Assembly: GCA_015680685.1 (NCBI GenBank)
Contig: MNCI01001191.1
Span: 45,666-107,766, forward strand
DNA: 62,101 nt
Source: Gnetum montanum
Taxonomy: Eukaryota; Plantae; Gnetophyta
Reading direction: 5' to 3'
Part shown: piece after piece, positions 2,777-48,100 of the stretch
Position numbering within the stretch: position 1 is the first letter of the stretch
How the letters are laid out: each line of letters starts with the position of its first letter
Notes under the pieces: model-generated
Seen by the model: only the letters and a program-made list of their open reading frames with translations
The model's database searches: none
What the model was told of the DNA's origin: nothing
Made by a program: the position numbers and the translations under genes

Positions 2777-3239
2777 ACATTACACAAATTTAGGAGATTG
2801 ATCTCATCCGTTTATCCCTTCCTAATAAGATGAGATCAGAGTTGTCCATGCTTATCCATATCCATCCATATCCAAGCTTATCCATATCCATCCTTATCCA
2901 AGCTTATCCATATTCATGTTTATCCATTCCTATGATTGTCACATTCTAGAATGTTGTTGGAAGAATCCAACTTTATATATTTGTAGCAGCACATTTTCAG
3001 AATTACATAGATTGAAGATTAGCAGATTAAGAGAGTTTATTTTTTTTGTTCCTTACTTTCTGCTCAGCATAGGTAGAAGATCCAGGGCCCTTTAGTTTAC
3101 AGTTTTCAAGGAGTCTGCAAAGAAGGAAGTTGCCTTTAAGGAATTTCAACAAGCAGCTGCGTTTGTGGACACTAAACATCATCGAGAAGTGTTGCAGAAT
3201 ATTCACAATCAGCAATGCCCTAATTGTGAATGTTCTACA
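2758..3239 (+). repeat. copia 3' LTR
   Basis: Starts TGTGGAA just after the PPT and ends TTCTACA (imperfect terminal inverted repeat). Contains internal CTTATCCATATCC-type tandem repeats at about 2850-2930. The partner LTR is outside the window. Confidence 0.75.
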
Positions 3240-3289
3240 TTGGTACTACAGGTAACCCTGTCCATATCTTTGTGATGATGCTTTTTATT

Positions 3290-3516
3290 TCGTGGGGCCA
3301 CATGTGGGGCCCAATTTTTGACCTAGTGTACATGTACATGGTGGCGTCCTTCTTTGTGTTTCTGTTTTGCTGTAGTTTGTAGTCTGTCTTATTTGTTCAA
3401 CCTAGTAGAGGGGAGAAGTCCCCCTTTCAATAGGGGAGACACCTCCCCAAATATCTTTTGTATGTACAGTCTTCCTATTTTCTTTTAATCTAATCCTGAA
3501 CATTCTCTCAAAAAAT
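3290..3516 (+). mobile_element. 5'-truncated LINE 3' end
   Basis: Ends TAATCCTGAACATTCTCTCAAAAAA, similar to the terminal motif of the LINE ends at 26221-26253 and (minus) 14582-14620. The left boundary is approximate. Confidence 0.5.
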
Positions 3517-23200: not shown

Positions 23201-24122
23201 CTCTAACTGTTGGGGGTTTGGAGATATCAAAATTCAAAGACAAACTGACACTCGATCAACAACGTCTACTGCTTTGTTTCACCCGCCAGAATGAAGAGTC
23301 GACCTAGTGGATACGGATCATGAATGCCAAGAAGGTTTGATGGCAGTTGGGGACGCATGACTTGAGGCCATGGCATACACTTTCCGACCATACACTACAA
23401 ATGCAGTTGCTAGGGTGGTTGGAGTGCGAGCTGCACTACCTGTTATCGACCATGTATCTGCCAGTGCTAGAGTAGAAACAAATATGGCAAGGGCATTTGC
23501 CCAAGAAAATTAAAGTCTTTTTATGGCTTTTAGAAAGTAATGCCTTGCCAGTACAAATGAATTTAAGAAGGCACGACCTTGATATCGATGCCACCTACCC
23601 ACTCTTGTGCTCCCCTGGACCATGCCTCCAGGGAGAAGTTTCCTTTGGCTTCGCCCTGCTCAGGCATAGTTCACCATCTTTCAAGTCCCAACAAGCATGT
23701 TCTCACTCAAACCCTTCTCAACAAGATCAAGGTTGGTGGACAGTGCTTCGTGCCCGTGCAGGGATCCCACCTTTCAGCTTCCTTGTGTCATGCGGGTTTT
23801 CAAACCTGACGACTCACGCATGTTAGACTCCTTGTTCCATGTTTCAAGACAGGTTGAATGGAAAGCTCATGAAATCCACGTCCCGAGCACGCAAGCGTTG
23901 TAGGACCCGCCCCTCGAAGGGGTGCACACTTGGGCCCTCGACCATCACAACGGCAACACGCGCACAACCAACTACGCACACTTGTGCCATGGCGCCAATC
24001 CACATGGACTCATCTCCCACACCAAGAGGCGGACCAAAGCATACACACTCCGCTCCACGTCGGGCCAGGAAGCAACGTTGGCCTCCATCCACTTCCCTCT
24101 CGATAATCTCAAGCACTTTTTA

Positions 24123-24156
<34 letters not shown>

Positions 24157-27100
24157 ATGGTACTTGTTCGCCATCGATCTCTCGTGCGTATTTGGCCTTG
24201 GACGAAACTTACCACCAACTTAGGGCTGCATTCCAAAACAATCTGACTCGTCGATAGCGCCCCGTGATGTAGCAAGGTCTGAGCCTAATGGGGCTATCAC
24301 CCTCTCCGATGCCCCATTCCAAGGGACTTAGGCTTGGTCCGCCACAGGGGACGCTTCTACAAACTACAATTCAGGCAGCAAAAACAAAGGAAACTTCTTC
24401 TTGAAGGCGCAGTCCAAGAGAGTGTTCTCCCTGGACCACATTAACCTAATCGCCAAGGGGGGGAAGCACAATTCCAAGGACCATCGGCTCAACTGACAAC
24501 AGAGAAGCTAGCAAAGAGCAGCAAGCCTACTCTTGTTGTGGCAAGGAGACCTACCACAGTGGGGAAGCCCACGAAGGTGGGGGTGGCCCCACCAACCATC
24601 CCTTGCGCCCAACAGTCATCCAACCCCCACCATCTCCCAACTTACGAGTATGGGCCCACATCAGCCTCGCTCCCCCATCTCAAGCCCTACATTCAAGCTC
24701 GCGGTGCCCATTCTTTCCGCATAGGGAGTAGCACCAACCCCACCCCCCCTTCCCAGGGGGGCAACGCTTTCTCCATTGGTTGCTCAACCTCTAAATTCTC
24801 AAACTCTACATGAAGCCATTCCTCCCCGCCTGGGAGTTTGAGGACCACCTCTTTGATTAGATCTTTCAAGAATAAGGTCCCCCACACACAGAAACAGGCG
24901 AAGCCCATCCGCTCCATCATCTATGTGACCTTATCGAAGGCAATAAAATCGCTGAAAATCCTGCACTACATCTAAGGAAATCCAAGTTCCACATTTCCCA
25001 CAGAATCCTGGAAACATGCATCCCTACTGAGGCATGAGCGAACAAATCCAGTTCGCGATGCACCCCCAACCACCAAGGGGTTAGAGCAAGTCCTCTAGCG
25101 CCATAAAACCACAGGACCCCCCCCCCCCCCCCCCCCTAATAGGACCATGTCACGGTCTTCAATTGTCTGGAAGATAAACAAGAGCAGGTCCTCCAACAGG
25201 CTCGTCACGTCCACTACCCCCACTCCCCAAACCTCCTTTGTCCACTATTAGATAAGGTCCATTTGGGGGTGAGCACCAGAAGACATGAACCATCCTATTA
25301 AACTACGTTGCATCGTCCTCACTCCCTCGGCTGGCAACCCACTAACTCGAAGGCACATGATGCCATCCAAACAAGAGCATTCCTCAATAGCCCCACTTGC
25401 TGCCTCAAAGTCCCCCATAGTACAACCCCCCTCAACGAACTCCCCAAGGCCTATCACCCACGGGCTAGTCAACTCGCCATTATCATGCATACCGTTTCCG
25501 CCCCCTCCGCATGCACTATATCTGCACACTCTGTTCTCCTTGCTCGCTTCATTCGTTCTAGTCGCTCCGTGTGCCCCATGCACTCCGTTTGCCTCACTCG
25601 CTCTGCTCACTCCATGCACTCTATTTGCCTTGCTTGCTCCGCTTGCTCCATGCGCTCTGCCCACACCCATTCCACTCCGTGCATCATCAATATTGTTTGA
25701 TATGATGGAAACACAAACAAACTTGAAAAAAAATATTGATGATGCATTATATAATTTGCTAACACGTGTTTGCCATATGTTTAGGCCAATTCATCAAAGG
25801 TGATATGAACAAGCTTCTGTATCAATAAGATGTAGCTTGTTAGTAACACTTGTGACCTGTATTCCACAGGTCACTAATTCCATCTTGACAAGGTAAATTG
25901 AGAATTTGATATATAGGTATTATTAAAGGAACTAGCTGAAAATAAATTCTGTCCAACAAATCCCTAGTGTCCTCAAATGGACCTGTTATTCAAGATTAGA
26001 ATGATTTTAAAGATACTAATTGATTGTCTGGCCTAGCGTGGTTGTCATAGACTACGCCTATTCTGCTCCCCCACCCCCCACCCCCCCAACTCTCCGGGCC
26101 CCCCCTCTTTAGTTTCTAGTTTTTAGTTTTCACAACTAGTTGAGGTTCGAGGCCTCCCATTTGGGCCACTAATAATGACCCGGAATTTTGTACTATCTCT
26201 TGTATTTTAATTTCCAGTAATATAATCCCAAACATTCTCTCAAATAAAAAAAAGATACTAATTGATTTCAATTATAAATCACATAAATATCAAGATCAAT
26301 GACATTCCTAGGGAAGTACTCACCCACCCTCTTGCTTAGTCAAACCTAATGTTGTTTGTTCCTTATGATACTAGAATCCCATAAATTTCAAAACAATGCC
26401 ACTTCTACAAAACAGGTAACCAATCTTATACATTAGGATGTATACGTTAGCATTTGTCATTCTAGTAATTCACGTCTAATAGTTATAGTTAACTACAACC
26501 ATTGAAAATTAGTAATGTGGTCATGAGAAGAAACTAGGAACCTGTCCTCTGCAAGGGACTCAACGTAATAGGAGAAAATTATTCCAAAAAGAATGGTGCT
26601 TATATATGCCCATGATATGTGAGGAGAATGAAAATATCGACTAATGTTTGCACCCTGCATGTGAAAAAAAATACATATTAAAAAATTCGAGACATCAAAT
26701 TGCTATATATCATATAAAAGTTATCCAAACTTGAAGAAAGTACTCACCGTTACTAAATGCCAAATGGCAAAAGGGAATAAAAAGCACGTGGCAGAAGCAA
26801 TAGTAATTGCATGAAGACGTCTCTTCCATTGTGTCTAGCAATGTAATACCATCCGAATATAATTAAATGTTGTGTGTAATTTATAAATAATCATTCAATT
26901 TACAGTTCAACCTTGAGATGGACACAGAAAAAATACGCAAACCTTCAAAGACACACGTCGCGCTACCACGCGCCGTACAGCTGACAATATTCCCGCAAAG
27001 ATAGGAGTCATCATTTCTCCTATTCTGACTTTACCATCCTGAGATACATATATATCTTCTAAACCTCCTTTAAATGGTGATTTCTTGTTAAAGTTCTCAA

Positions 27101-30100
27101 GACGAAAATTTTGGATAAAAACGCAGGAAAAAGATGTGAATTTAATTCAACCTGATATATCAAATCAATTAAATATGCTAGTTTTACGAAACATCTTTTT
27201 TATTCAGAAAAAAATACGATACCTTATCATAAGTAAAATTTAATATAATTATGAAAAGGATATAGATAGGAGCATTGTTTGCCTTAAACCATCCTTGTGA
27301 TAGAAAGTAGAATGCTGCCATCATTGCTACGAGGCCTCCAACCTTCATCCCCAGTTATTTCAAAGTCAACATATATTAATGATAAGAAGCAACTCTAACA
27401 AGAATTCTTATGTTTGCTTAAAAGTATGCTTGGTAACATCAACACTTTAACTATTTATTTAAATTTTTACAGTGTTATTTTCCAAGAACGTTTACCTAAA
27501 TATTACAGAATGGCCATAGGACTAAATATGTTTTCATGAGGGTTACATATCTTCCATGAGGGCTCTCAGCAAGCAAACAACTTTGCTCAATAGTTTTAGA
27601 TTTCAAAGATAACAAACATCTAAAGAATGCTACAAATAGAAACAGAATTCCCTAAAGGATGTATTTAATGGAGAAATAAAAGGTATGATACACGCTACCT
27701 AGCCTATTACATGCTTTGGGAAGATCTTGTATTTGGGTTGCACCAAAAAATTTAGCAACCAAAAAAAAAAATATTTCAACAGTGTTATCCTTATCTGTAA
27801 GGTTTTAAAACGTTAATAGTCCCCCAACAAGACTAAATCTGTGCAGCAATTCTACTAATGGCATGAATAATGGAATGTTGTGTCACGGCTGCATCATAAA
27901 TTGTAAGCACAAACACATTGAATGTTAAGAGTTTTCAATGTTAGTGGTCAATCTCAATGCATGAAGTAAATACTATTTAAAAATATAAATAGTGAATGAC
28001 TTGTACAAAGATAATTTATGAAGGTTAGTGACATTTTCGAGATGTATAAAGAAGCACACTCTCAAGGCAACAATAATGTAAGATATTGCAAGATACAATA
28101 TTTCTGGCTTGCAAGTTATAGCTTCAATCGCAATGAGATATTTTGAGACAAGTCCCAACCTAAGGGCATGGTATATTTAGAATGAGATCATCCTTAATCA
28201 TGAGTTGATGCACATATGCAAACAACATAAATTTCAAGCTATGGATCTAAAATTAGGCATTGCTAAAGCTTATGATACTCTAAGCTGGAAGGCTGTACAA
28301 CACATAATGGAAAGAAACGAATTTTATATCTAATTTCATAGACTCTGCTTCAAAAGGCAACAAACAGCTACATTCTCTCCTAATTACCATGGCTACATGC
28401 AAGGCATTTCTTGTAACTATGCCAGAGAATTAAGGCAAGGAGATCCTCTCTCCATACTTTTGTATCATTGTCATAGATACCATGTAGGCCTTCCTCAAGC
28501 AACAAAAAGTTAATTGAATTTTAATTAGCAGAGTAAATTATCTCATGAATCACTAACAACAGAAAAGGAATTGAAGCAAAGAATGGCCCAAGGATCTAGT
28601 AGGGGGAGAATGCCAATATGACAATTGACATCTCTTATGCATCCAATGCACAATAGAAATGTCAAAATATCCAAAACTTAAAATCATATCCATAGCCATC
28701 TAGCTCAACAAGAAGCCACTTAACTCGATCACTTCACTTTAACAAACATAAATTACGCACAAACAAAATGCAACCAGTGAAATGGAAAGTCGAACCAAAG
28801 GAAAACATATTATTCATGAACCTGAAAAATTGCAAACTCAAATCCAAAATAATGCAGCAGTCTCCACACTTATTCACAATATCGATGTCAATGATACACA
28901 TTCAGTTTCGGAAAAAAGGAAGAATTAGAAACTAGGTTGTGCACATTAATAAACTTGTTTACATAAATAACTAGAGAACAAGCACAAGAATCTTATGAAA
29001 CAGTAGTTTATAAATCAAATTATCAAAACTCTAACAAAAGAATTAAAAACAACTACATCCAGTGTCAATTGACAAACCATAATGAATAATGTTAACAAAT
29101 AATTTCATAGTTTTTTCTAATATTCAATATATATAATAGCACATATAGTCTAGTTATTAGTAGAAGAAAGAACATACAGTACAAAAGTGTTGTCAACCAT
29201 TTATTTCTCCTCTCTTGATCCATGTTCTTTCCATTTGATGCCCTTCATTGATTTCATGTGAAGCTCTCAATCCCTTCATCTCACAATGCTCCCAATTTCA
29301 CAAAAAAGCTCTCCCAAATATACACTCAAATTTCACAGCCAATTTCACAACCTATTTCACAATCAACTTTCAATTTCACAAGAATTTCAGAGTTTCTAAT
29401 AAATCTCTCCCTCATTTAACAATTGATCTCTCAATATTGAAATGAAGAAGAATGCATCCATAGAGACGCTATAGTTTTTGTTTGTTTTGAATCATGTTTT
29501 TATGAGAAGTTCCTATCAATAAATTTTGATAATGAATATTTGTATTACAAGTGTTTGACAAAATGATTAGAAGGATTTTGATGGTTTAGAAGCCAAGTTT
29601 TGCGATGCAATATCTTAAGGTTTATGTTGCAATTAATGGATAGAATATTTAACCAAGAAGATTCAAAAGTTTTAATACAAGTTTCAATATGATTTCACAT
29701 GTTTATAAGTGAAAAATTAATATGTAGAAGAGGCTTTCATGTTTGCCTCAAATCTCATGGAATTTTGATGTATTTGTAAAAATCAAATCCTCTCATGCTT
29801 GGAGTTCTCATGCTTTACAAATCTAATCAAATTACATTAATATATAAGCATTATTCATGAAGATTTTATAAAGCATGCCAAAGTACTTGCATTCATATAA
29901 AGTATTTGTTGAAATTTCTCCAAGTTCTATTTAAAACATCTGAATTGATTTAGTAAGTTCTCTTAAATTATGAAGATCTAAAGTATGTGCTACATATTTC
30001 TAGAAAGCTCTTTGAATTCTTTACAGCTTAGAACCAAGGAAATCTAAAAAGGCATTCATGAAAATTATTTTATTTTAATTTTATTCAAGTCTTTCCAAGA

Positions 30101-33100
30101 CAGAGGGAATTTGGACAGTGTTGAAAGATTAGCCCATAAATCAAATTTCCGTAAATATATTGATTTCTATTTTTTTTAATTGTTGAATTTTTCATGAGCT
30201 TTCCAATAGAGGGTCATATGAATCATAATTCAGTTTCATTTGAGAGATGATTTTTAATCATAATGATTAGCACTAAAAACTTGCTGGTTCTTAGACAGAA
30301 TGAACATATGTTAGTAAATCTTCTATATCTCTCTCATTTCATCATATTTTTAAGTGATTCTTTTTTCTTAATTGAAAAATGAAAGATTTTTAATGTCATG
30401 AAACAAATTTCATAGCAGTAATTTATGAACAAAGAGATCTGGAATCAATGCATTGCATGCTTCTGCTAACAAAATTTTGTTTTTTATTTGCCATTTTGCA
30501 TCAATTGTTCTAGTATTGATTTTTGTTTCACTTCATTCATTATCGTCTTTGTATTTTCTCTCACGCCTCATTTTTTTCCCATTTGACTTACTCTGCTGTT
30601 TTTATCAAACAATTATCCTCCTCCTCCTCCTCCTAGCCTTGTCCCACCAAAATGAGGTCAGCTATGCACACCAAAAACTAGGAAAATCCTAACCGTAACC
30701 CTCTTTTGCTTATTAATGGTCCTAGGGACCTTTAAATCCAATGTACTTGCTTCTACACTTTGTTACCTCAGGATGCACTGGTTAACATACTGCATCACTG
30801 GCTACAACCTGCTAAGCCTTTTGCAAATGCACTGGTTACTCGTACCAGATGCCTCTGCAGAGGCCGATTTTGGGATGGTTACTCGTACACTTGTTGTGTC
30901 TTGATACTGCTGGTTTGAATCTTTTCCTCAAATGGAACAAAGCATAGCTCATGCCCATCCAATATTGACCCCAAAAAATTAACAGTAAATTATCTACCAA
31001 GAACAGATATTAAATTCAAAATTTCCAAACATTCATTTACCTTTCTCCATATTTGAGGTCTTCGTCCATACAGAAATCCAGAAAGGACACCCAAACAAGC
31101 ACCCGCATACTCTGATAATGTAGTCCTGAAAGTCTTAAACAAATGCTTTGCTATGTAAAGATGGGATTTTAAAATGTTTTTATTTAACTGAGAGTTGCAT
31201 TTGGTGAAAAAGAGAGAAGAAAAATATTTTGTTCGCTAGTTGTCATGCGGAAAACAAGCTGTTGTGCACATGAAATTATTTCCAAAATGTTCAGTTAAGC
31301 ATAGCTAAGGAGATCTACTGCTTGTCATTCACTTTTAAGAAGCCAAAACGTAAAAAACACTTTTTTTTATAGGTTGCTGCATCCAAGAAGTTGCAGGCAT
31401 TCTGTCCAATAAATAACTAGGGCCTCATTATCTTCACATGGACATAACAAAACATTTTAATCTGAGTTTCAGTTTCAAAAATTCTGTGTCAAGTCAAAAT
31501 ACATTTCATTGCTCTAGTGATTTTCTTCTGTGGTCCTTGAAAAACTATCTTGACAGAGTCCTCAGGACAAGCCCAAATAAAGGACAGTTTCAAAAGATTA
31601 AAAATAATATGAAAAAGGGGCTTTGAAAATAACGTTTGTACACTTGGGAAAAGTCAAGAAATGATTTGTCTGAGCCGTCGAGCGGCCAGCAATTTCTGGA
31701 CTTTCTACATATGCACAATTTAGCTGATCTGGAGATTGCCGACTGCAAATTTACCTGGAGCAACCATCATAAGGGAACGGACTTCGTTCTATCAAGAATT
31801 GACTCTATTTGGGTAAGCTCTAGTATCTTATTGGATCTTGAGGTCCAAGTTTCTAGGAAGGAGAGGCTAGCGTCGGACCATCGGTTGCTTTGCTATCAGG
31901 TGGGGAAGCGGTCTCCACGAAAGTCCCCCTTTCGTTTCAAGCAGTCTTGGTTGCTAAACATTGGCTCAGGCCGTTGGTGACCCGAACCTAGGCAAATTAC
32001 CCGTCCCAAGTGGACCCTAGGGAGTTATTGAAGTGTGGGCTGCCTCGTCTCAAGTAGGCTATCCATTTGGTCAATGCCACTGAGAGCTACTCTTTCAGAA
32101 ATGGGCGTGCAAGTTTGCTAGAGCAGCTGGCCACTCTCCAAGCTTGTCAGGAGGTGGCAATTGAGGTGGCTGAGGAGGAACAACTGGTTTTAAAGGAGTT
32201 ATAGGACCTAACTGCAAAAAGGAGTTGTACTGGAAACAACATGTCTGGATTAAGTGGTTGCGGGAGGGCGACAAAAACACAAAGTTTTTCTTCACGATGG
32301 CTAAGTCTCACAGCCAAGCAACGACTATCAAGCTAGTGCATAATGGGGTAACCCTCACCGAACCCCAAGATGTTACCCTTGTGCTACATGAGTACTAGTC
32401 TAAGATTTGGGCCAACAAACACAGTGCCATTGTTTGTCCCTATCAAATCGGTTTTTGATGAAACATATAAGCATAAGCTCTTGGAGACTTTTTCATGGAC
32501 TGAGCTGGATGACGCAATGACTCCATGAGATCAGATCGTGCCCCTAGGTTGGATAGGTGGCCCATCAAATTTTTCCAAGTGTTTTGTTATCTTAGGGGCA
32601 AACATTTTGGAGGCCTTTAATTTGTTCGCAAAACAGGGTTGTCAATCTGTTGAAATCAATCGGAATTGTATTATAAGACTTATTTATATTATCAGTTATC
32701 ATCTCTTCACACTTTTACACTGGCTTGCAAATTATTGGTTGTTATTAATAAAAACAGACAGATTATAAAACAAATGAAACAAAAAAAATCTAAGATAATC
32801 TTTTCAGATAGTGAGCTTTCAGTCAAATCTAAATACCTGACTGGGCCACAAGATTCAAGACCTCTTCCCCATAGAACAAAGTACAATGCCAATATTCCAC
32901 CATTAATAATAGATGGCACCACCTGAAAAATTATAATAGGTAGCAATGAAATGTGTGCAATATGTGAAGGTTATGAAATAAAGTACTCATCATGGAAACA
33001 ATTATTAGTATGTAAATGGTAACGCTTGAGTGTTAGCATTACTAGATAACACATGCTAATTGCTCAATAATAATGATCACGTGTTAGCAGCCAGTGGTGC

Positions 33101-36100
33101 AGCACTGAAACCCCTAAACTAGACCCTAGTAAAAGTATATATTAGAATATTTATAATTGTTAATGTTACTAGAATAAAATCTAACCTGTGAATGAGATAA
33201 TGGCCTCCCTTTCCATGGTTTCTGCATTATCAAAAATAATACAGCTGATAAAAATAAACAAACGAAGATGAACTCGATGACAGGTATACCAGTTTGGGCT
33301 AAATACTGATAGGTTGCATAAACCGACCATATCCGCATGAACTGACCCAAAATGTGAATTACTTGCAATGGCACATGTCTGCAACAAACCGAAAATAATG
33401 AAAAAAAAAACAACAAAATACCAATATCTATTATACTTTCTAAAATAAAACAAATCTAACAGTTTCTTTAAAACAGGGTAATGTAGTAACAAACATGATA
33501 ATGTGTTGAATGGTATGAATATGTTAAGCTAAATCTTGTACCTTCATTACTTAATTGATAAATACGGCCTTTTTGTAAGGAATGAACCGTTGCTAATGAG
33601 TTCTTTCTAGATGGTTCTGTAGGGTTTGTTTTTATTCTATGAGTGATTTCTTTGGAATGTTCAATATTGGTGAGATCCTTCTAAATGCATAACTTTCTTT
33701 TTTTGAAAAAGGATCAGAGTTATACTAAAAACAGAATGTACATAGTACAAACCACAAAGGGGGATTGGAAAACCAAAAGGCAAAGCCTTCATCAGACAAA
33801 AAGATAAGGGAAAAAACTCCGCCGTGCCAATTCGCAGAAAGCAGCAACAGACAAAGAACATAAAAATAGATAAACAGACCGTTGCAAGTGGTATGGGAAC
33901 CTGGTCCCACCTCATAGCCTTGATCCCCCAAGAAAATCAAAAACATATTTGAGAGCCCTTCCAAAAATCTAACAAAAAATGATGTCATCTAAGAATGGAA
34001 GATGAAGGCAACCACATCAACACCACTAAATGTGATAAATCCTATTTAGCAAATCCCTATCTTCCTTGGACTTGAAGAAATCAGCCACCTAGCAAAAGAT
34101 CTGCAATTTCCCTAGATGCCTTCTTTTCTCGGCCTCGCTCATGTGGGTAGCCTTATTTGGATGGCCCATGTTAGAAACCCAACAATAGAAAGATCTAAGA
34201 TCATTTCATTGGGTATAACAATTGATACCAACATCACATTGAGACACTCCCTATTCTTGAACCAATCTCTAAGCTTTTCCTCATGTTGCTTCTTTAAGCA
34301 ATTTTGCATCTCCCTATATTTCTAGCTTTCAATATCATTTCTTCTCTACTCTTCCTTCCCACAACACCTCTCCTCTTCCATCTCATGCCAAACCTCCACT
34401 CTAATTTAATCACGTCGCTCAAACTTCGGGCTATATCAAAGCTCACCCTCCAACAACTCCGATCTTCTCTTGTTTTCCCACTTGAGTTTGACCTCCAAGT
34501 CCTCTATGGCCACCATAAGATTGGCATCCACTTGTTACTTCAGTTTCATTTCAATCTCAGTGGCCCGTCGCAAAACCTCCTTTGCCTGCACCTTCCAACT
34601 CTCCTCCCATTCATGTTTGATCTATTGCAGCTATTGTTGGAATTCACACTCCAACATCTCTTTCATCTTCTCCGCCCAAGTTTGCATAGTATCCTCAACC
34701 TTCAAACTCCCCACAACATCACCAACCTCCAAGTCCCCTTTAGCTTATGCATCCTCCAAATCCTAGACTTCATCCATGGCATCCAAGCCCTCTTCACCAC
34801 CCATAGCCTCCAAGCTCACAATATCATCTGCCACCTCCAAACCAAGTCCTCCTTCTGTAAACAATGTGACAGTCCACAATTCTAGATGGAGAAATAAGAA
34901 AGAATTGTGAGTGAAGTTATGCCACATGCTACAAGACTAGTATGAGACCCAAATGTCTACCAACTGTAGGACCCCTAATAACCACTTTCTAAAGATTAGT
35001 ACAATTTTTTTCTTTTCCAATCCCTTAAAAACAAAGGATGATACTTACATTAGCAACTAACAAGGCTGTGATTCATAATGATGGGATGAGTACAAGGCCT
35101 ACATGCCTCCTTCTCTCATTAGACTTAACAAGTTGTTGATAGGATGAGACCTTGTCACTTTTCCTGATTCTAAAAATGAGTGCATCTATTGCATATCATC
35201 TAACTTTAGTAGCACTATGACATCTAAAAAAAAACTAGCATCATCCAGGGTGATTGCTAACACTTCCCATCACTTGTGAAGCTAGAAAACATCAAACATT
35301 TGTGTGATTCACTTGTTTCAAGTTTTATTTTACAAGCAGCACCAACAGATGTGGTTGGGTGTACTCCTAATCTTCCACTATGTTTCTCTCATATAAGATC
35401 ATTTAATCTATAATACACTTCAAACAATGGCAAGGATGCAAAAATTGTATAGGTTTCAACAACTTTGATCATGCAATGTGGCATTGCATTTCCACATTGA
35501 GGACCATCCAACTCAAAAGAACCTGGTCACCATCCAGCCATGAGTTGGGTCATCTTTGGGTTCTAAACTACACAAACAAAGCTTGGCTCAACTATCATTT
35601 TTGGACTACACCTTGATATACCCCCAAGATAGGTGACCAGGGATCATACATGAAGTACACACTTACAAATGGCACTTGCATCATTGAAAACCTCTAGGTA
35701 TCCCCTTGGGTCCAATGGCTAAAGATATTAAGCCGAATTAAGCATATGTACAGGTAAAGTTGGATAGTGATGCTTATCTCCACATCTACAGCAAGGTGTA
35801 TGCAAAATAAACAAACAATGCAACCCACCCATTCAAGGTATGCAGATGAATATATTATTATTAGAATGATTAGTTAATGATTAGTTAATGATCCAGTGCT
35901 TTACACAATGCACACCAATCAAATGCATCACCCACCTAATTACTAGTTGTGGGTTTAGGTGAATTACTTATCCTATGGCCTAAAGGGCTTCTAATCATAA
36001 TTCATGTGGGTTAATTTTAGGGAAAGCATATAAACATACATGATCACACATATATTTTCTGTTCTTTCTTTGCACAAATAAAGGAATATAATTGCTAATA

Positions 36101-39100
36101 AATAAATGGGATTAGATCATTGTAGCAAATATAAATAAACAATATTTATTTTGCATGAAAGAAAAATCTAACTATGACAAAATGTACAAACATTCATGGA
36201 ACGAAAGACTTGCTCCAAAGAGACTTGCAGGTCTACAAGATGCAATATTCCTATAATACATATGAAAGAAGTAGCTGTGCATCTCTCAAGTGTAAGTGCC
36301 ATATAAAAACTAGCTCCCATAATACAATAGAGAGAGTTACAGTAGTTAGGGTTTGTTTTTCTTGAGACAATTAGCCAATGTTTTCCTCCATTTTCGAGCA
36401 TCCAAAATTAAGCAAACAAAGTCTGAAAGCAAGGCCTGAATTTTTACCAATCAAATCTGTGTTTAGGGGAGATGGAGGGCCTAAAAATAAATCTAAAATT
36501 ATAATCCACACAGTTCATGGGAATTGGGACTTAACAAGGTTTTGTCTTGTTTTGTTTTTCTTTTATTTTTCTCTACCAGCCTAAGGTATCTTTAGACTCT
36601 ACAATATCTATAATTGGGAGATAGAACCTTATGAAATAGATTACCAGACATAAAAAAGTAATAGTAACAGTAACAATACCCTTTTTTTTCTTAGGCTAAA
36701 ACAGAGAATAGAGAATCTCTGAATTCCTTTTCTTTAAAAAAAAAATGAGAGAAACAGAGGTAGATTCTATGTGTGATGGTTGTCATTTCCATTTTTTACT
36801 ATGATCTAAGAAATCAGAGAGCAATAACTGTCAAATAACAGAAAATAGAGAAAAAGAATGGCAACCTCTATACTAGCATTATTAAATAATCAAATTTTTG
36901 ATTTTATAAAGCAGAAAACAAACAAAATCCCATGTGCTCTTCTGCAATATGGAAAGGAAAAATAACAATAAAATCTGATATACACTAAGCTTGAACATCA
37001 TGATGGATTAGCATAGTTTTAAACTTTGAAATCTTCATTAATAAATTGTCCAGCCTCTCATGTTTTCACATTGAGAGAAATGTAGGCTTAAACAAAGGAC
37101 CATTTAACAATGATTTGGGACATGAAAACTCTCTTAAACCCCCTCAAAACTGACCGAAAAATGATCAACAAAACAAAGCCATCAAAAATCCCCAATATGC
37201 ATAGCTTTATTTTTAATAATAAAATGAGTACTGATGGGGCATTAGAGACAGCAAGGTGTAATGGAGCAGCAGCGACAGCAGGAGCAGCAGCAACAGCAGG
37301 AGCAGCAGCAAGAGGGACGACAGGCGGGCGTCAGACCGCAACAATAGCAGGAATAGCAGCAAGCGCTAGAGTGCAGCAGCAACCGACGGGCACAGGAGAG
37401 GAGAGCCCGACGAACGTAGGGGCAGAGTCTTAGGCAAACGCGGGAGCAGGCAGAGGCGATGGGGAGTCTGCACCACCCAGTGCGTAGACAACCACAAGGG
37501 TGTCACGTCTATGCTAGTAGGTGAAGGGGTACAGATAGCGTGCAGGATTAGCCGTGATGCATGAAAAGGGCACAAAGAAAGCCCTCCTTCTAGCGCCAAA
37601 AAATTGTAGCGACCGAAAACGTCAGTGGCTGGAACACCGAGAAGTTACCGGACGTACAGCCTAACCCCAGATCCGCGCAAGGGCCGTGCTGAAGAAAACG
37701 GAAACAGGGTGCCCTAAACGGTCTAGTCGATCAGACAAGGACTTAGTCGGTGTACAAAAACCTTTTGTAAACAATTGTTTTAAACTGTTGAGCGTGGAGA
37801 TTGGGATGGAGAAACCGTGGCACACAAAACAATGAAAGCCTAGCAAAGTATGTAACTTAAGCAATAAATGCAGACTAATAGACAATGATGCAAACTATGA
37901 GGAAATGAAATGAAGTGAGCTTGAGTGAGAGAATGCATCACCCCAAGATCGGGGGATTTGATCTTTGTTTGGCTGAAGAAGATGTACAACAGATGTGTAG
38001 TGTGGACAGGCACAGCTTACAACGAAATGGTATGGTCACAACCCTTGAACTGCTACCAATGACCTGCTAACCAAGGCTGATGAGCTGGTGCCTGCTAGGC
38101 TAAGAGAGATATGGGAAGTGCTACTGCTGGGGTTTGCTGTTTGTCAACCTTCCGCTTGCCCGTCTCTTTGCCATTGCCAATCGCGAAAAAGCCAAATGCC
38201 AATAAATGTGAATCTCCAATCGCAAGAAAGTCAAGTCCAAAAGCCAACCTTCGAAGCCAACCCCTTGAACGTCATTCGCTAGGGTATTTATAGAGCCAGA
38301 TGCAGGAGAGAGACATGGTTTGGATGCCACGTGTCCTGGGTCCCACATGGTGTGAACGTGGACGTGTCATACTACTGTGCAATGCTACACTGCAATGTTA
38401 CGCTAACATGCTACACTGCAGTGTAACGAGGTTGGATGCGAAACCTGCTAAGCTGAGCCGTGACCATACCGTTCAAACTACGTATGCCAGAATCTAGGAA
38501 ACTACCATGTTTTTACAAAGAATGCCAACAATGAATGCAAAGTGGAGCCTGTGTTCTAGGACTACGTCTTCCCTGCTCTTGCGAGTAAGCTCAAGCGTAG
38601 GGACAATTTTGAGAATTAACAAGGGGGTGCAACACAAAGCAAACTTGTTGATCTTGTCTGTTGAAGAGATGCCGAAGCAGAAATGACCATTGTTGGCAAG
38701 TTCTGGAACTGCTGGAGATGTCCTGGGGCTTCCACACAAGTGTTACGCTGCCCAGCGTATCGGCGTAGCATAAGCATCCGCACGCTACGCTGTGCTACGT
38801 AGCGTAGCGTAGCCACCAACCTTGAGTTAAATCTTGCCTAAAAATCGAATATACCTGTCTGAGGCTTAGCTAGGCAAGCAACTTCTGCAATTGACAACCT
38901 TGTCTTCCATGTCGAAAGGTCCTGGGACCTACGGAGTTTGTCCTTGGGACACTTTCGTGCTTTGTGTCCTTGCTATGCCGTGCTTTGTAGCATAGCACAG
39001 CATAGCAGCTAGTGTGACATAAGTCCTTGCTTGATTTGCAATGCCTTGTTAAGAAACTTTGCTTGGAACCTGGGGGCGAAGTGGAATTGGCAGTCTTGGA

Positions 39101-42100
39101 GGTCTGAATGTGGCCAAGTGCAATCCCTTTGCTAGGAACCATTTGGCAGAGGACCTTCATGTGTTCTAACCTTGCTACGTTGCACTACGCTATGTAGCGT
39201 AGCATAGTGTAGCATCTTGTTTAACTTGCATTATGACTTAGTTTGCAAATGCTTTGTCACAAGATGTCAGTCATGTCCTGGTGTGGCAGCAGAGCAAGCA
39301 TGTTTGATGGTTGAAGCATGGGCAATTATGTTTACTTTGTCAAAACAGTCTAAGCAGAGGCAATGCTACGTGGTCACCCTGCTACGTTATAGCGTAGCAC
39401 AGCGTAGCACTCAAATGAAGATGATTTTTGACAAAATTTGCCACATTCTCCTACATCACGTTGATTATGCTTCAAAGACAAATCAGGGTAGGTATCCCAG
39501 AGGGCTGAATCACTGTCAATCTGCATCTTTGGCGCCCATTCAATCTCCATATGGCCTGCTACAATGTGCAGCGTAGCGTAGCGTAGCAGGTTTTGCAGTT
39601 AGAAAACTTGCTGAGCTGTTTAGTCCATCCTGAACACTTTCGGTAGCTCCTAGCATGGTCCTTGGGTAGACCATCAGCCAAGTCATGTGCCAAGCTGGGC
39701 AAGCTAGAGGGTGTAGCAAGCCTGTCAGCCCGGGAGATAGAAAATTTGCCAAACTGTACGATCTACCCCTAGTGCCTCTTTCATGCAAATTGCCCTCATG
39801 GCTGGGTGCTGCGCTGACTGTGCTGCAAAGGGTGGCTAGCAAGCTCAGAAGCAACTTTGCAGGCATTAGGACTTCTAGGGTGCCATGTTGTCTACATGGT
39901 CCAGCGTGACACCACGCTTGCAGAGGTCTTTGCCCAAATTTCGGGACTGTGCTGAATTAGGAGAGTCCCAAAATTGATCATATTTCAATGGCCCCTCTTT
40001 GTTGACGTTTGGAGGATATGCCCGAGAGACATCGACAAAGAATATGAAACACCATGAAAAACAAGATGCCAACACCGCTCTTCAGTGCCCGCTCGAATGA
40101 TGCTTTGCTATGTTTGAGAGTATTTGGAGGGCAATGTAAGGTAAGGGGTAAAGAATGGATTTAAGGAAACAGGTTCGGGGAAGAAATGAAGGTAGAATGT
40201 GACTTTATGAAAAATTGTTGTCACAGTGTGGTCCCTTGTTGGAATGCTTACGAGGGAATCAACACGCATGGGTGCCTTTTTTCTTTGGCCCTAGACCTCT
40301 CACTGGAGTGCTTAGAGATGGTCTATTTATGGCTGAAAATGATTGCAAAGCAGCTTTTGTGCCATTTGTTTTAGGCACTTGTCTCTTTTTTCTTTTTCTT
40401 GTGCCTTTTGCTTTTCTTGTTCCACACCCACGTTCACTTGAAGACAACCTTGTCGTCGCTGTAGGACAAGTGTTTCCTCCCTAGGATGAGTTGTGTTACA
40501 TCCATGTGAGACTTTGACCTGCCTACAGATGCTTCCCATGGGACGAGTTGCGTTATGTCCATCATGGACTTGATGGTTGGGCATGTGAAAGGGCTTTATG
40601 TGCATCAAGGAAGCTTGCGAAGAGGATATGGAAAATTATGGGTATAAGGAAATGGAGAGTAAGCTAGCTAAAGGGAGAGTAGGGTATGCACTCTCAAGTA
40701 GCTAGGCTAATCAAAGCGGCCACTTTGAAACAATGTAGCGTCCTGCTCTCATGGTGAAACGCATCTCTGAATTACGCCATCTTGGCTTTTATCCTGCAAA
40801 CACAACAAAGAGAAAACCAGAAAAAACAACCATCAAGTGAAGTGAGGGCAAGGTCCTGCTTGCTCGGGACACTGCCAGGGTGGCAAGCATTGTCTGACTT
40901 GTGTAATGTCCAAAGCAAGAAGGCCAGCGCAGGCTTTGGCATTGGCAGGCTGAAAAGCTTCAACAGCCCTGCTGGAAATGGGCATCGAAGAGGCTAGGAG
41001 CGGTGATGATGCAAGTGCTCAAGAATCCCCACCCAAGGCAAGCATCATGCAATTCAGCTGCAAGGTGAGAAGCCTAACAGCTAGATGCCTTTTGAACTCG
41101 GGTGATGGCGAGGGCTGGAGAATGGCAACCTTGTGGCTGGGCCACAATCGTGCTGGGACTCCAGCAGCAAGTGCTGATAGCAGGAGCTACGACCAAGATG
41201 ACTGGTTGTGGTAGCGGTAGCTCCAGAAGGTCAGCAAGATGTCAATTGACATCTCCGAAAGATCAACAAGATGCCAAGGGCGATGACGTTGCATGTGTTC
41301 CAGAGGGCTTTTCCTTGATGACGTGAACTTCGTTCTGAAACTGCAACATCCCACCCCATGTTGTTTGAGAAGCTCAAAAGTGTGGACGCTCTCTTGTTCA
41401 TAGGGTCATACACGTGAGCTGGGAGGCATTACACTACAAACCCAGTTTAAGGTCTTGGTAGACCATCAGATGTGCTAGTTTAAGGTCCTAGTAGACCGTT
41501 GTGCTTGTTTAACGTTGTAGCGGACGATGGATGGCCAGTTTAAGGTCATAGCGGACCATGTTGTGGGTGCCAGTTTTATGTCATGGCCCAAAAACGTGTT
41601 GTGTCAATTTAACGCCATAGCGGATGTGCTATGCCAATTTATAGTCATAGCAAACGTGTTGTGCCAGTTTATAGTCATAGCGGACTAGCTGTGCCAGTTT
41701 TACGTCGTAGCGGACGTTAATGGGTTTAAAAAGGTAAAGAAAATGCTAATATCGCCAGTTTAAGGTCGTAGCAAACTGTTATTCTGTAACGTTGTAAGTC
41801 AAAATTGCCAATTTAAGGTCTTAGCAGACCGGAACTTTGTAAGTCAAAATTGCCAGTTTAAGGTCTTAGCGGACCGCACCCATGCAAAAAATTATTTTTT
41901 AAAAATATTGCCAATTTAAGGTCGTAGTGGATCATTACTGAGTCACATTGTAAAGGAATGGAGTGAAAATGTTAGTGCATCTACGTACTATGCTGCAAAT
42001 GCGCGTTACGTTGCAATAGACCTATGCTACACTACAATAAACTTCTACTACGCTACAAAGGGTGTCCCATGTTACGCGTGGGATATGAAACACTCTGAAA

Positions 42101-45100
42101 GTGACATGTGTTTTAACCGCACATACTATAAATAGGGGATTACCCCCTAGTAATCTTGTCACTTTCATTGTCAGAGCTAACACCTAGAGCATAGCGCAGT
42201 TGAGCTAAAAGACAGCCTAACGGTCGTAGCGTAGCGGTTGATACACCCGATACATCCAAGTTTGTGAGTAAGCAATGGCACGCAAGAGTAAACGCAGGCA
42301 TTAGGGGCTTGCCAACCTAGACGAAGGGGAGCGCACCCTGCGACGTCTAGCAGTTGGCATGGATAAGATACCCTCCAAAATGGACATAGGGCCATCTCAG
42401 GTTAGTCATTCTTTATTGTGTCACAGCTTATTTTATGAGAGCCTTGTTGTAGTTTGATTTATTATTTTGTTTTTTGTCTTATGCAAGATCCAAATGGAGG
42501 TGCAAGACCTAGTGGAACAAGAAACGGAAAGGCTAACGAAGACTTATAGCGTGGCAGCGAAAGATTTTATTTTTGTTTTGTTATTTTATTGGATTTCATT
42601 TTTTGTAAACATTATTGTATAGACTGAAATTTGATGAAGAACAGAATGTGAAACAATTATTTCATCTGGTTTTAGTTAATTAAATTTTTTTTATTAATGT
42701 GTTTGGACCCCTTGTGGGCCCCTTGTTTTAGTTTAAGGCCATCTCGGGCCATTGCTAGTTTTAGGCCATTTCGGGCCGTGGCAATACTTTAAGGCCATTC
42801 CAGGCCGTTGCTCAATGATGATTTTTTTTTATTTTTGTTTTCTTTGTTTTAGGGAAGTAGAGTTGCCAGTTTTAGGCCTTAGTAGGCCACGATGGTAGTT
42901 TAAGGCCATTCCGGGCCATTGCTAGTTTTAGGCCATTTTGGGCCATATGTAAGGTATTGACAACAAGGGCAATGCAATCAGCAAACTCAATGTAAAATGT
43001 AAGTAATGGAAATAGCAAACTTAATGTAAAAATGTCAATCATGTGAACAACAAACTTAATGTAAAAATGTAAATCATGCAAACAGCAAATTTAATGTAAA
43101 ATGTAAATTATGCACACAACAAACTTAATGTAAAATGTCAATCATGCAAACGGAGGTATAACCATTTATTGAAGTGATATGGGTTAGGCGAGGCATACGG
43201 CCGGGTGGCTTTGCATTGGTATTCGTCTATGTTATCGTTTGCGGCTTGGAAGGGCAACTCAGCCCACGTGGTTTCTTTGTTTGAGTTAACGATTTTGGCC
43301 TATTCATTTGTCAAACATGACGTTTCAGTTTGAATAGCTGCTTCATTTTCAGAGATTTCTATCTCTGAGCCTTGTTCCACATTTACGTTGTTTATGGCCT
43401 GGGGAGCCACTTTGTCACCGTAAATCACCACTTCCCCGCCCGTGTAGGGTAAGTGGATTTCCTGATGTATAGGGGAGGAGACAACCCTTAGTTGGGCTAA
43501 CCATGATCGTCCCAAGATCAGGTTGAACCCAAGCATCTCCTCCACCACGATGAATACTACGCTGGTGGGGAACTGGTCCCCTACCACAAAGTTGATGTGC
43601 ACAATCCCTTTTACCACCACACGCACCCCATTGAAGGACTTAAGGCATGAAGTTGTTGTGGGCTTGATTTGGTCAACCAAGCCCAACTTGTCTACGATAG
43701 AAAATGGGATTACGTTGGTGGCGGCACCGTTGTCAACGTGTACCCTGCAAATCTTGTATTGGCCAACCCGAATGGTGATGAACATCAGAGCAATTGTCAC
43801 CTGACCCTTTTCAGGGTCATCTTTGATAGCCTTATCGTAAAATGTTAGCTGGGTAGGCCGTGGTTCTTCAGCTACGGGGGGGAGCATGACAGAGTGAATG
43901 GCCTTTTCTTCAGCGGGTAGATTTCCACTAACAGGAATGGACATCAACATGCGAACCATTGCCTCACGATGCATCGCAGAGGTCATTATCAAGTCGTATA
44001 GGCTTAATGTTGTATTTTTCTACTTCAAGGCCTGTTTAACTTGTGAAAGGGCATTAAGAAAGTCTTGCCCGCCATCTTGATGTTTGCTAGCCTTCTCTTC
44101 TTCCATACACCCAGGAGACAAATTTCTCGAGGAGGAGTAGCTTCAGGTTGAGCGCTAGGCTTTCTTGGTCCGGAAGATGATGGTTGTGCCTGTGTTTTGC
44201 TATCGGTAGCTAGTGAGGAAGAGGCCATAGGCACTGTTGACAAGGGCATAGGCTTAGGGGGACCTAGCGCGGTACGTTCCCTAGCCATCTTTTCTACTAA
44301 GCGCTCTTCCCGCTTCTTTGGACGGGGAGGCTAAGGTGCAGCCTTCGTCACTCAATTTTGAGTTTGGGGGGAACTTGCATGCCTTGGCACCTTAATGACA
44401 AACAGTGCCTGCGTTGTTACAGTGGGTTGCGGTGCGGTTTTCAACACAAAGGGTGTAGGAGGTGTCTAGTGAGGGGCCCTAATGACAAAGGGGGCCTGCG
44501 ACCTAGTTGTCGTTGGTGTTTCTACGTTACGAGAAGGTACGCGAATCACAAATGGTTGTTGTGGTGGTTCAAGGTTATTGCCAATGCCGATAACGTTGAT
44601 GGTGTAACTTGCATTATTAGCGTTTAGGGGATCTTTGTAAACACCCATCGACTGGTTTTTAGGTCAAACGGGACTGCTCTCATCCAGGACCAACTTGCCC
44701 TGACCAATCATGCGTTGTATGTCGTCTTTCAACGCTAAGCAGTAATTTGTATCGTGACCACACAATTGGTGATAGTCACAAAAACGCTCTAACATGAAAT
44801 TCTTAGGCACTGGTGATTCATTGGGCGTAGCCAAGGAGGGGTTCTTAAGAACTTCACAATACCTTTGATGGCATTTAATAGCCTCCTCCAACATTTGTTT
44901 GTGTTGTATACACCCGGCTCCCAACAATTGCTTCAAGAGTTCTAAAGGCTTAATCGGTAACAGGGTATACTTTGAGCGGTCCTTGCGCTCAAAGTTTGGC
45001 CTTGGCTGGGTTTGCGCCACAAATGTTGATGCTTGTGGCTGACCAGTGCTAGTGGGGCTAGGTGTTGCGTTAGTGGGAACCTTGGGCATAGTAGCAACCT

Positions 45101-48100
45101 TTTTGTTGTTGTTAGGCTTGGTCTCGTTGGCTACAGCAGCCACCGTGGTTGCTGCAACCTTGCCTTTCTCCTTGTCTTTTTTGGTGTGGGCATTCCTGTA
45201 GGCCACATAAGCTAGGTCCCTACTAGCCTCCACCGCGTCTTGGATGCTCTTAGTTTGAGCGAATGCTTGGCTGAGGGAACACGGGGCCAAGTAGTAGAGC
45301 TTAGACTTAATAAAGTCATTGACTGCACCCTTAAAAATGGCCAACAAGTAAGCCTCGGCAATTGGTTTGCGTATTTCATTCAGGATTGCACTCCACCGTT
45401 GTATAAATCACTGTACAAATTCTAACGGTTTCTGCTTAACACTCATGAGCTAATCTAGAGTGACTTCCGGTTTAAGTTATACCTAAAATGAGTCACGAAT
45501 TGACTTAGCAACTCCTCCAAGGTGGAGATAGAGGCACATGAAAGTGCACGGTACCAATCTAAGGCTTTGCCTGTTAGAGACATGGCAAAGACACGAACGA
45601 TGATGTGAGGCCATGGTTACAAAAGCAATGATTCAACCCTGAAGGTTACCAAATGTGCATTCAGATCGCCCTCCCCGTTGTATTTTGTAAATTGGGGGAG
45701 TGGCACCCCAGGGGGCAACGTGAGCATAGGGACAGCTGGACTGATCAAATCATCATGGTAAAAGTCCATGACTTGGACAGTCTAAGAACCGGCGGCTTTG
45801 AGCCACTTAATCTCTTCAGTGAGTGTTTGGATGAGTTGGAAAGCTTGATCCAGACCCGGGGATGTCACGAAGGGTTGTGGGGCTGCAGGAGCGGCCATCG
45901 TTTGTGGCGTTGTTGGGGCGGCAGCCTGCCCCACGGTGGGCGCCATAGGGTTGGTTACTTGCCCGGTTGGTGGAGCGGCCCACAGCCCTGCGTTTTGTTG
46001 CACTACGTGTGGAACCTGATACGCTTGGGGTTGCACATAGTGTGACATCTGAGATGGTAGGGTGGTAGGGAAAGCAGCAGTTGTCGTCCACCATGCGGTA
46101 GAGGTAGGGCCTGCTACTAATGGTGGGACGGGTGCAGACGAGGTGATTGCAGCAGAACTTACGTGAAGTTGTGACGTAGGCAGTGTGTGCACATACGACA
46201 ACATAGACGTCACAGACGTTGAGTGCGGTACGTGGATAGACTAGGAAGGAAGGGTAACAGGGAATGAAGTTGAAGGGCCCATGTGCTGATACATTGAAAA
46301 CATTGCGTGGCTACCCATTGCCATAGAGGGTTGAGGTTGCGAGACTGTCACGACAATAGGAAAGGGGATGGAAAATTGTGATTGATGCGAACAGGCAACA
46401 AAGGTGGAAGGGACACTTGTGGTGTAAACTGGACCACCACCTTCTGAGTGGAAGTCCAACTCCTCTTGCCCATCCTGGAAGGGTTCTACATAATGGGACA
46501 CTGTGTCCCATTCCCTTGCCCTACTTGGACAAGTTGGTTCAACATCGACTGGTACGTCTCAGTCAGCAGGATGGTGGCATCGAGAGTGGGGATGAACTCC
46601 CTCCCGTTCCGATAGAAGAACTCGAAGTTACATTTCTCTTCGAGTTCGCGATGGTCCAATGGTATGTTGGTTTGCATTTTTGCAAATAGAAAGTGGTATC
46701 GCTCCGTGTCTTGAGGGAGATGTTTGGGCGATTGCTGCCACAGTCTTAGAGACTGCCTCTGTACTAGCACTGGGCTGGGTGGTCACTCGAGACCTGACAT
46801 ATTCTGGAAAGAGTAGGGCACTTCCAAGCTTGAGGTGGGAACTGCAGTGGTAATGGGATTCATTTTCCGTTGTAGTTGGAAAGCTGTAGGGAAGATAGGC
46901 TAAAGCTGGGCACGTTCGCGAGTGTCGGAAACTGGTTTCCTTCATCGTTACGCCTGTTACGTTGAGTAGGACTGCTACGCTAAGAGGGTTGTTACGCTAC
47001 AGGGGATGCAGGTAGCATAACGCGATGGGTAGCGTATCATGCTAGATAGCATAACACAGCAAAGGGCGTTACACAATAAGCAGCATAACACTATAGATCG
47101 GTAGCGTAATGGGCTAGACAGTCGAAGGACAGCTACGCTGACAAAGTTACTACGATACCCAAAGGGCAGGCAACGTAACTTAGTTGCTTGAGTAAGCAGT
47201 CAGCGTATCACACTGATATGGTCGCTACACCACACAGGACATAGGCAGTGTAGCGTAGTTGACAGAGTAAGTGTGGTACAGCAAACAGTTGGAGGCTTTC
47301 GTCCTGCAGGGTTCCAGGGGAACCATCGTTGCGACCAATCTGCACCGCCTAGTGCATAGACAACCACAAGGGTGTCACGTCTACGCTAGTAGGTGACGGG
47401 GTACAGATAGCATGCAGGATTAGCCGTGATGCGCAAAAACGGCACAAAGAAAGCTCTCCTTCTAGCGCCAAAAAACTGTAGCAACCGAAAACTTCAGTGG
47501 CTGGAACACCAAGAGCTTACCAGGCGTATAGCCTAACCCCGAATCCTTGCAAGGGCCGTGCTGGAGAAAACGGAAACGGGGTGTTCTAAACGGTCTGGTC
47601 GATTAGACAGGGACTTAGTTGGTGTACAATAACCTTTCGTAAACAATTGTTTTAAAATGTTGAGCGTGGAGATTGGGATGGAGAAACCGTGGCACACAGA
47701 ACAGTGAAAGCATAGCAAAGTATGTAACTTAAGCAATAAATGCAAACTGATAGACAATGATGTAAACTATGATGAAATGAAATGAAGTGAGCTTGAGTGA
47801 GAGAATGCATCACCCCAAGATTAGGAGATTTGATCTTTTTTTGGCTAAAGAAGATGTACAACAGATGTGCAGTGTGGACGGCACAACTTACAATGAAACG
47901 ATATGGTCACAACCCTTGAACTGCTACCAATGGCCTGCTAACTAGGGCTGATGAGCTGGTGCCTGTAGGGTTAAGAGAGATCTGGAAAGTGCTGCTTCTG
48001 GGGCTTGCTATTTGTCAACCTTCCGCTTGCCCAAATGCCAAAAAATGCCAATCTCCAATCGCAAGAAAGTCAAGTCCAAAAGCCAACCTTTGAAGCCAAC

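Follow-up and report, generated by a model that had tools for sequence, protein, structure and literature searches.

Positions 33693-34964 (minus strand) of the window, the whole 62,101-nucleotide stretch of Gnetum montanum DNA analyzed here, are likely to be the 3′ terminus of a plant L1-type LINE, old and long dead, that carried an inherited J-domain tail. This copy (copy A) is compared below with a younger, distantly related element (copy B, or LINE B) and a front-truncated copy (copy C) in the same window, and with copies of the family in sequence reads.

The LINE copies of the window

The window is TE-rich plant DNA, with a Copia reverse transcriptase (RVT_2, 7e-76), several L1-type LINE pieces and nested LTR elements; the plant DUF4283 domain (2.6e-22) is found in ORF1 of its L1-type LINEs. 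The features of the three copies are as follows.

Copy B
~14583-20405, minus strand: extent of the element (ORF1, endonuclease-like ORF, RT, tail, UTR, A-tail)
19746-20405, minus strand: ORF1 (Pfam DUF4283, PF14111, 2.6e-22)
18489-18899, minus strand: endonuclease-like ORF, similar to other LINE copies of the window
16860-17507, minus strand: RT (RVT_1, 2.9e-9)
15612-15262, minus strand: charged stretch preceding the J-like domain
15261-15037, minus strand: J-like domain (HPD at 15156-15148; rank 1 in the blind J scan, 9.9 bits)
15036-14986, minus strand: H-x3-C-x2-C-x-C tail, from motif reading
14983-14985, minus strand: family stop codon (sense in copy B; stop in all other contigs and RNA reads, four runs)
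14583-14982, minus strand: 3′ UTR, 3′ terminal motif and A16 tail, from 3′-end alignment

Copy A
51887-52999, minus strand: decayed reverse-transcriptase region (tblastx to LINE B RT)
51599-51736, minus strand: zf-RVT remnant (PF13966, E 0.0068)
50862-51598, minus strand: end of the ORF2 core and linker to the tail, in frame with zf-RVT
34965-50856, no strand assigned: nested insertion splitting the copy (TGTAG...ATTACA ends; CCAAC flanks)
34268-34964, minus strand: linker and acidic/charged helix-prone stretch (by composition; collinear with copy B)
34029-34267, minus strand: J-like domain (HPN 34163-34155; 1-nt frame slip at 34229; alignment to B z 14.5)
33972-34025, minus strand: Cys-rich C-terminal tail (..C.CGC..LP) to the stop, aligning with CPDCAC..LP in B and CPNCEC in C
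33693-33971, minus strand: T-rich 3′ UTR (44 % T), 3′ terminal motif (33730-33706) and A-tail, from 3′-end alignment

Copy C
3096-3515, plus strand: front-truncated copy with J helix III/IV, CPNCEC, UTR, 3′ motif and A-rich end (tblastx and alignment)

The LINE identity of these copies rests on RVT_1 and DUF4283 in copy B and on the zf-RVT remnant of copy A; the DUF4283 ORF1 is seen in copy B, that part being absent from the truncated copies A and C. The endonuclease-like ORF has no Pfam match at 0.01 but resembles, at 46-64 %, the corresponding region in two other LINE copies of the window. An N gap at 15861-16305 conceals the link from RT to tail in this element.

Another L1 LINE on the plus strand (6247-9103 and 22223-23580), with 52-70 % protein identity to copy B, is split by about 13 kb of nested insertions, LINE B among them, and its 3′ part ends before any visible tail. 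Directly after its truncated end (22223-23580), amid TE-rich DNA, lies a eukaryotic LSU rRNA fragment (23837-24459, minus strand; Rfam RF02543, 219 bits, model positions 24-664). Further plus-strand LINE fragments at 28187-28498 (RT) and 31651-32308 (endonuclease and RT start) show 38-46 % identity to copy B and have no tail nearby. Three plus-strand ORFs of 322, 130 and 260 aa in 10220-12799, none with a Pfam match, are probably the gag region of an unclassified element; the 322-aa ORF is rich in H, R, S and E, and the 260-aa ORF crosses an N gap. The 3′ UTR of copy B (14808-14968, minus strand) contains long homopolymer tracts of C and G, which in the run-on frame translate to poly-Pro and poly-Gly; the read data pass over them as repeats.

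The earlier note had placed the module of copy A at the 3′ end of a LINE. That placement stands, while the LINE body does not adjoin it: the copy's own RT and zf-RVT lie at 51.6-53.0 kb and would have been severed from the tail by a later insertion of 15.9 kb. Compared with LINE B RT by tblastx, the decayed RT region shows 36 % identity over 188 aa (52665-52102) and 37.5 % over 88 aa, with a summed E of 2e-37. The zf-RVT remnant scores 17.5 bits (PF13966, E 0.0068), below the 27.5-bit cut-off, and pieces of the linker at 50862-51598 have no Pfam match. A LINE piece closer to the tail (31.6-32.3 kb) was rejected as the body of copy A, being on the opposite strand and unrelated.

The insertion (34965-50856) spans 15,892 bp between CCAAC flanks at 34960-34964 and 50857-50861, and holds gag-like and aspartic-protease ORFs on the minus strand. 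It has TG..CA ends and a 5-bp duplication. Two direct 2.5-kb repeats, 88 % alike (37467-39991 and 47339-49826), lie 2.5 kb and 1.0 kb inside its ends, and because these internal repeats stop short of the ends the structure is not simple: the insertion is either a rearranged LTR element or a composite. When 34965-50861 (the insertion and one CCAAC) is removed, RT, zf-RVT and tail share one frame of about 2 kb, interrupted by stops only, up to the slip at 34229. This single frame supports both the join, which as read from the sequence depends on the 5-bp duplication, and a single long ORF2.

Conservation of the tail and abundance of the family

For the comparison of copies A and B, both tails were read with X at every stop and at the single frame slip of copy A (34229); copy A has decayed to 11 stops and that one slip in 259 codons. 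Alignment leaves the two tails clearly homologous at the protein level. The J parts (minus-strand readings 34267-33972 in A and 15261-14986 in B) reach a Smith-Waterman score of 82 against 24.4±4.0 for shuffles (z 14.5, 0/2000), and the full tails a local alignment score of 138 against 37.6±6.1. The charged stretch by itself is not significant (z 1.3), and it raises the collinear score from 82 to 138. All of the motifs that the earlier note had aligned by eye were found where it had placed them, including HPN at 34163-34155, and shuffling statistics bear out the resemblance of the two peptides. W-x5-C begins at 34264 (A) and 15258 (B); LGIxC lies at 34229-34218 in A, past the frame slip; (Q)VAxF is at 34088 in A; and CxC..LP occupies 34016-33996 (A) and 15024-14995 (B). 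Both copies have exactly 30 residues from the first Cys to HP. The stretch preceding the J part of copy A, which the earlier note took for a coiled coil, is acidic and charged (23 % D+E, 19 % K+R), and the tail is followed, as that note described, by a 266-nt UTR of 44 % T and then by an A7 tail at 33705-33699.

Searching the remainder of the window with LINE B by tblastx brought up copy C (E 9e-7), whose alignment to B gives z 18.9. It starts inside the J part, as for a front-truncated LINE insertion, and a profile of the module matches only copies A, B and C within the window. All three share a motif of ~30 nt at the end, with an A-tail behind it (A7 in A, A16 in B, A-rich in C), so that the tail lies inside the retrotransposed unit. 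The earlier observation that A and B have no obvious nucleotide similarity was right for the coding part and does not extend to the last ~30-70 nt before the A-tail; blastn at word size 7 found nothing beyond an 18-nt match, at the 3′ terminus. The final 70 nt of A, B and C have 72 % mean column identity, their coding parts being unalignable as DNA; these DNA-conserved ends of three LINE lineages lie at 33698-33765 (minus), 14590-14665 (minus) and 3445-3516 (plus). The reverse transcriptase may recognize the conserved 30-70 nt as a 3′ signal.

Identity at codon positions 1, 2 and 3 is 0.47, 0.58 and 0.33 for the J part of A and B, and 0.54, 0.66 and 0.24 for C and B, with about 0.25 expected at each for random sequence. 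Positions 1 and 2 together exceed position 3 with p 0.002 to 0.0002, in codon alignments whose protein guidance somewhat favors positions 1 and 2. The divergence of A and B has thus been constrained at the protein level. The copies belong to separate LINE lineages, A and B having RTs that are 36 % identical across 188 aa, as against 57 % for B and another LINE of the window. The tails, at 27-28 % identity, are less alike than the RTs, which fits old common inheritance better than recent capture, since tails captured late and handed from one lineage to another should resemble each other more closely than the RTs do. Two proposals of the earlier note hold up on these data. Retention of the module at the protein level across distinct LINE lineages agrees with the z of 14.5, an RT identity of only 36 % and the third copy; selection, as opposed to recent capture, agrees with third codon positions near random, second positions 54-66 % identical, and a tail more diverged than the RT. 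The tail thus looks like an old, selected part of these elements.

Sequence reads place the window copies in a much larger family. Contigs from DNA runs of three species, and reads from one poly(A) RNA run, were aligned to 14500-16800. All three species show depths in the thousands; over the tail the depth is at least that over the RT, rising toward the 3′ end, and higher tail depth is as expected for front-truncated LINEs. Where copy B differs from other copies, it mostly has A or T where they have G or C, a pattern that marks it as an old methylated copy. Its stop at 15360-15358 is private, a Gln (sense) codon standing there in 83-97 % of the depth of other copies. At 14985-14983 all others have a stop where copy B reads through, so that the family protein ends in ..CRQLPTNP, three codons after the Cys motif. 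Among the common indels listed, eight that break the frame fall in the UTR, and the sole common one in the coding part of the tail adds 6 nt. A separate ORF3 starting from an MGG common to A and B was considered and rejected, the ATG of B (15708-15706) being Thr in other copies. RNA reads cover both strands of the tail, mostly at <90 % likeness, and are family transcripts, not expression of copy B itself. The LINE family with this tail is very abundant in three species, and its ORF stops just past the Cys motif.

Likeness to J-domains and alternative readings

J profiles were built from E. coli DnaJ, CbpA, DjlA and HscB together with 80 bacterial loci and 80 viral-contig loci, and a broader profile comprised 104 J-domains; the comparison with it was a single planned one, not a library search. 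In hhalign the alignment of A, B and C matches the broader profile with a probability of 79 %, a score of 31.0 and an E of 1.6e-5, and as the J idea was prompted by the sequence, single-comparison E-values of this kind overstate significance. The match takes in 62 columns, J residues 7-68, with one 3-residue gap. Scores rise as homologues are added, from 22.7 for B alone to 24.6 for A+B and 31.0 for A+B+C, and likewise from 26.4 against the narrow J profile to 31.0 against the broader, more diverse one. Column shuffles give 8.8±1.8 with a maximum of 15.6 in 400; the controls, namely 11 alignments of real LINE proteins, the module in reverse and the charged stretch, reach 7-17, over short stretches.

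The details of the match fall where a J-domain would have them. HPD of copy B (15156-15148) and HPN of copy A (34163-34155) are placed on the HPD loop of the model by both HMM and hhalign, copy C being without this region owing to its truncation, and copy B has basic residues in helix II. In a pairwise alignment of B with E. coli DnaJ, Y..LG to HPD is in register at a score of 40 that 5/3000 shuffles reached; A aligns likewise in register. As single sequences the copies score low in the J HMM (B 9.6 bits, A 3.3 bits), and copy B has a window-wide E-value of 0.33. A blind J HMM scan, run on 90-residue tiles from the six reading frames of the window, ranked B first (9.9 bits), C fifth and A sixth among 685 loci, ranks that are not independent because the three are relatives; the next unrelated locus scored 4.7. 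Each copy fell on the part of the J model predicted by their mutual alignment, C on J positions 39-64. The stop-free pieces that A and B offer, which are halves only, had no DnaJ match at E up to 10 in Pfam hmmscan, and phmmer of the two halves of B against PDB sequences gave chance matches or none; the whole domain is invisible to library tools because of a stop in mid-domain in B and the badly broken state of A. Kinship of the tail with J-domains is probable on this sequence evidence.

Between helix IV and the family stop, adjoining both, lies a Cys/His end-piece. Its H-x3-C-x2-C-x-C spacing is identical in B and C; in copy A one of the three Cys is gone and the His is shifted. No known zinc-finger model in Pfam matched its stop-free pieces, and metal binding, which the earlier note had suggested, is at present a guess.

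Protein databases yielded no relatives of the tail, and no intact copy turned up in the searches. A search for homologous proteins with the 149-aa and 60-aa pieces of B found none. With the 60-aa piece, a full HMMER search against 1.84 billion representatives returned one match and no true relative; that match (P0001) was rejected as spurious, a repeat protein with only the word ..YCPDC.. in common. Two metagenome loci were also rejected, since they match in nothing but the word HENRNRRQ, on the strand opposite to bacterial genes, and the ESM Atlas had no usable match to the tail. Such repeats are probably masked before annotation, which would account for the lack of relatives.

Three other explanations of the tail deserve to be weighed against an inherited J-domain. 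The resemblance of A and B could be chance or low-complexity similarity in a noncoding 3′ UTR, a thought that the charged stretch, not significant on its own, might encourage. It is scarcely credible given the z of 14.5 (0/2000) for the J part, the identical spacing, a third copy, the asymmetry among codon positions and a family stop codon directly behind the motif. Pieces of a host J-protein gene, transduced (3′ transduction) or retrocopied and foreign to the LINE, are another conceivable source, since host genes are sometimes transduced and the tail has no relatives among known LINE proteins. That origin is very improbable, however: in three copies, whose lineages have diverged to 36 % RT identity, the tail stands between ORF2 and one and the same 3′ motif with its A-tail; tail depth is at least RT depth in three species; the tail is more diverged than the RT and is in frame with ORF2 in A; and among the 1.84 billion representative proteins there is no cellular homologue.

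The remaining alternative accepts the tail as a real conserved C-terminal LINE domain and denies that it is a working J-domain, so that HPD and Y..LGI would be there by chance or convergence and the function might be, for example, nucleic-acid or metal binding via the Cys motif. The halves have no Pfam or PDB match, HMM bit scores are low, the hhalign probability is only 79 %, and the conserved H-x3-C-x2-C-x-C is foreign to canonical J-domains. Against these points, the match spans the whole J-domain in register with HPD exactly on the loop and a basic helix II in B, its score rises with homologues added on either side, and controls never exceed 17. We regard a domain of another kind as unlikely.

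Parallels and possible role of the tail

In the inherited J-domain reading, the ORF2 protein of this LINE clade would have continued past zf-RVT through a linker and a charged helical stretch into a J-domain of ~65 residues, the His/Cys motif and the stop. The tail would have come down by inheritance to the lineages of A, B and C, in all of which protein-level selection would have maintained it for as long as they were active. Through its HPD loop the domain may draw host Hsp70, in cis, to the nascent ORF2 protein or to the particle that this protein forms with RNA, where activated Hsp70 would aid folding, assembly or release of the particle; the Cys motif may have a part of its own. We think it fairly likely that a plant L1 clade encodes its own Hsp70 co-chaperone in this form, a J-domain and His/Cys end fused to the RT protein and selected since before the split now seen as 36 % RT identity. 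It would be the first retrotransposon J-domain to be reported, and the full-text literature searched describes no LINE or other retrotransposon with one.

Judged by its sequence, the element is largely of a known kind, an L1 LINE with an added C-terminal module, here apparently co-chaperone-like and undescribed in the literature found. Smyshlyaev et al. reportedly described, in 2013, plant L1 LINEs in which the RT is followed by an additional archaeal-type RNase H domain; these are also discussed in PMC5348765. Like the elements here, these have a DUF4283-type ORF1, RT and zf-RVT, and their extra module is a lineage-inherited C-terminal extension of ORF2; unlike them, the present copies have a charged stretch, J-like domain and Cys motif, and Pfam saw no RNase H in the pieces of A or B. 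Canonical DnaJ/Hsp40 J-domains (PF00226), especially type III with a J-domain only, share with the tail the Y..LG(I/V) start, basic helix II, HPD loop and helix III/IV over ~62 columns. The tail differs from them in its C-terminal place on an RT protein, in the H-x3-C-x2-C-x-C that follows and in being very diverged, and is known here from sequence alone.

Selfish elements elsewhere use J-domains of their own. The polyomavirus T antigens recruit host Hsc70 through an N-terminal J-domain, which small t antigen pairs with Cys clusters. By analogy, the LINE tail would likewise equip a selfish element with its own J-domain for host Hsp70, next to a Cys cluster; polyomaviruses are animal DNA viruses with the J-domain N-terminal, and no sequence relation is claimed.

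Extra domains have become fixed in other retrotransposons too. Insect R1 LINEs have a C-terminal SF1 helicase domain of viral origin in ORF2 (PMC4686597). These resemble the present elements as non-LTR elements with an extra C-terminal ORF2 domain, and differ in LINE clade, host kingdom and domain; for the J-like domain here no source was found. Host-like domains are likewise fixed in an orchid Ty3/Gypsy LTR retrotransposon (an AlkB demethylase; PMC9289625) and in retrotransposons with DNMTs (PMC5890265). The likeness to the present case is the rare, lineage-wide fixation of an accessory domain, and the differences are the element class and the domains.

Apart from such cases, old copy A shows the tail to be ancient and inherited rather than a one-off capture. 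For annotators, 1-1.5 kb of apparent 3′ UTR in these abundant plant LINEs is likely to be coding sequence. LINEs are thought to rely on host chaperones that are recruited indirectly. Should the J-domain reading be true, a retrotransposon would be in direct control of Hsp70, as some DNA viruses are, and an HPD mutant in a retrotransposition assay would offer a handle on chaperone action in target-primed reverse transcription.
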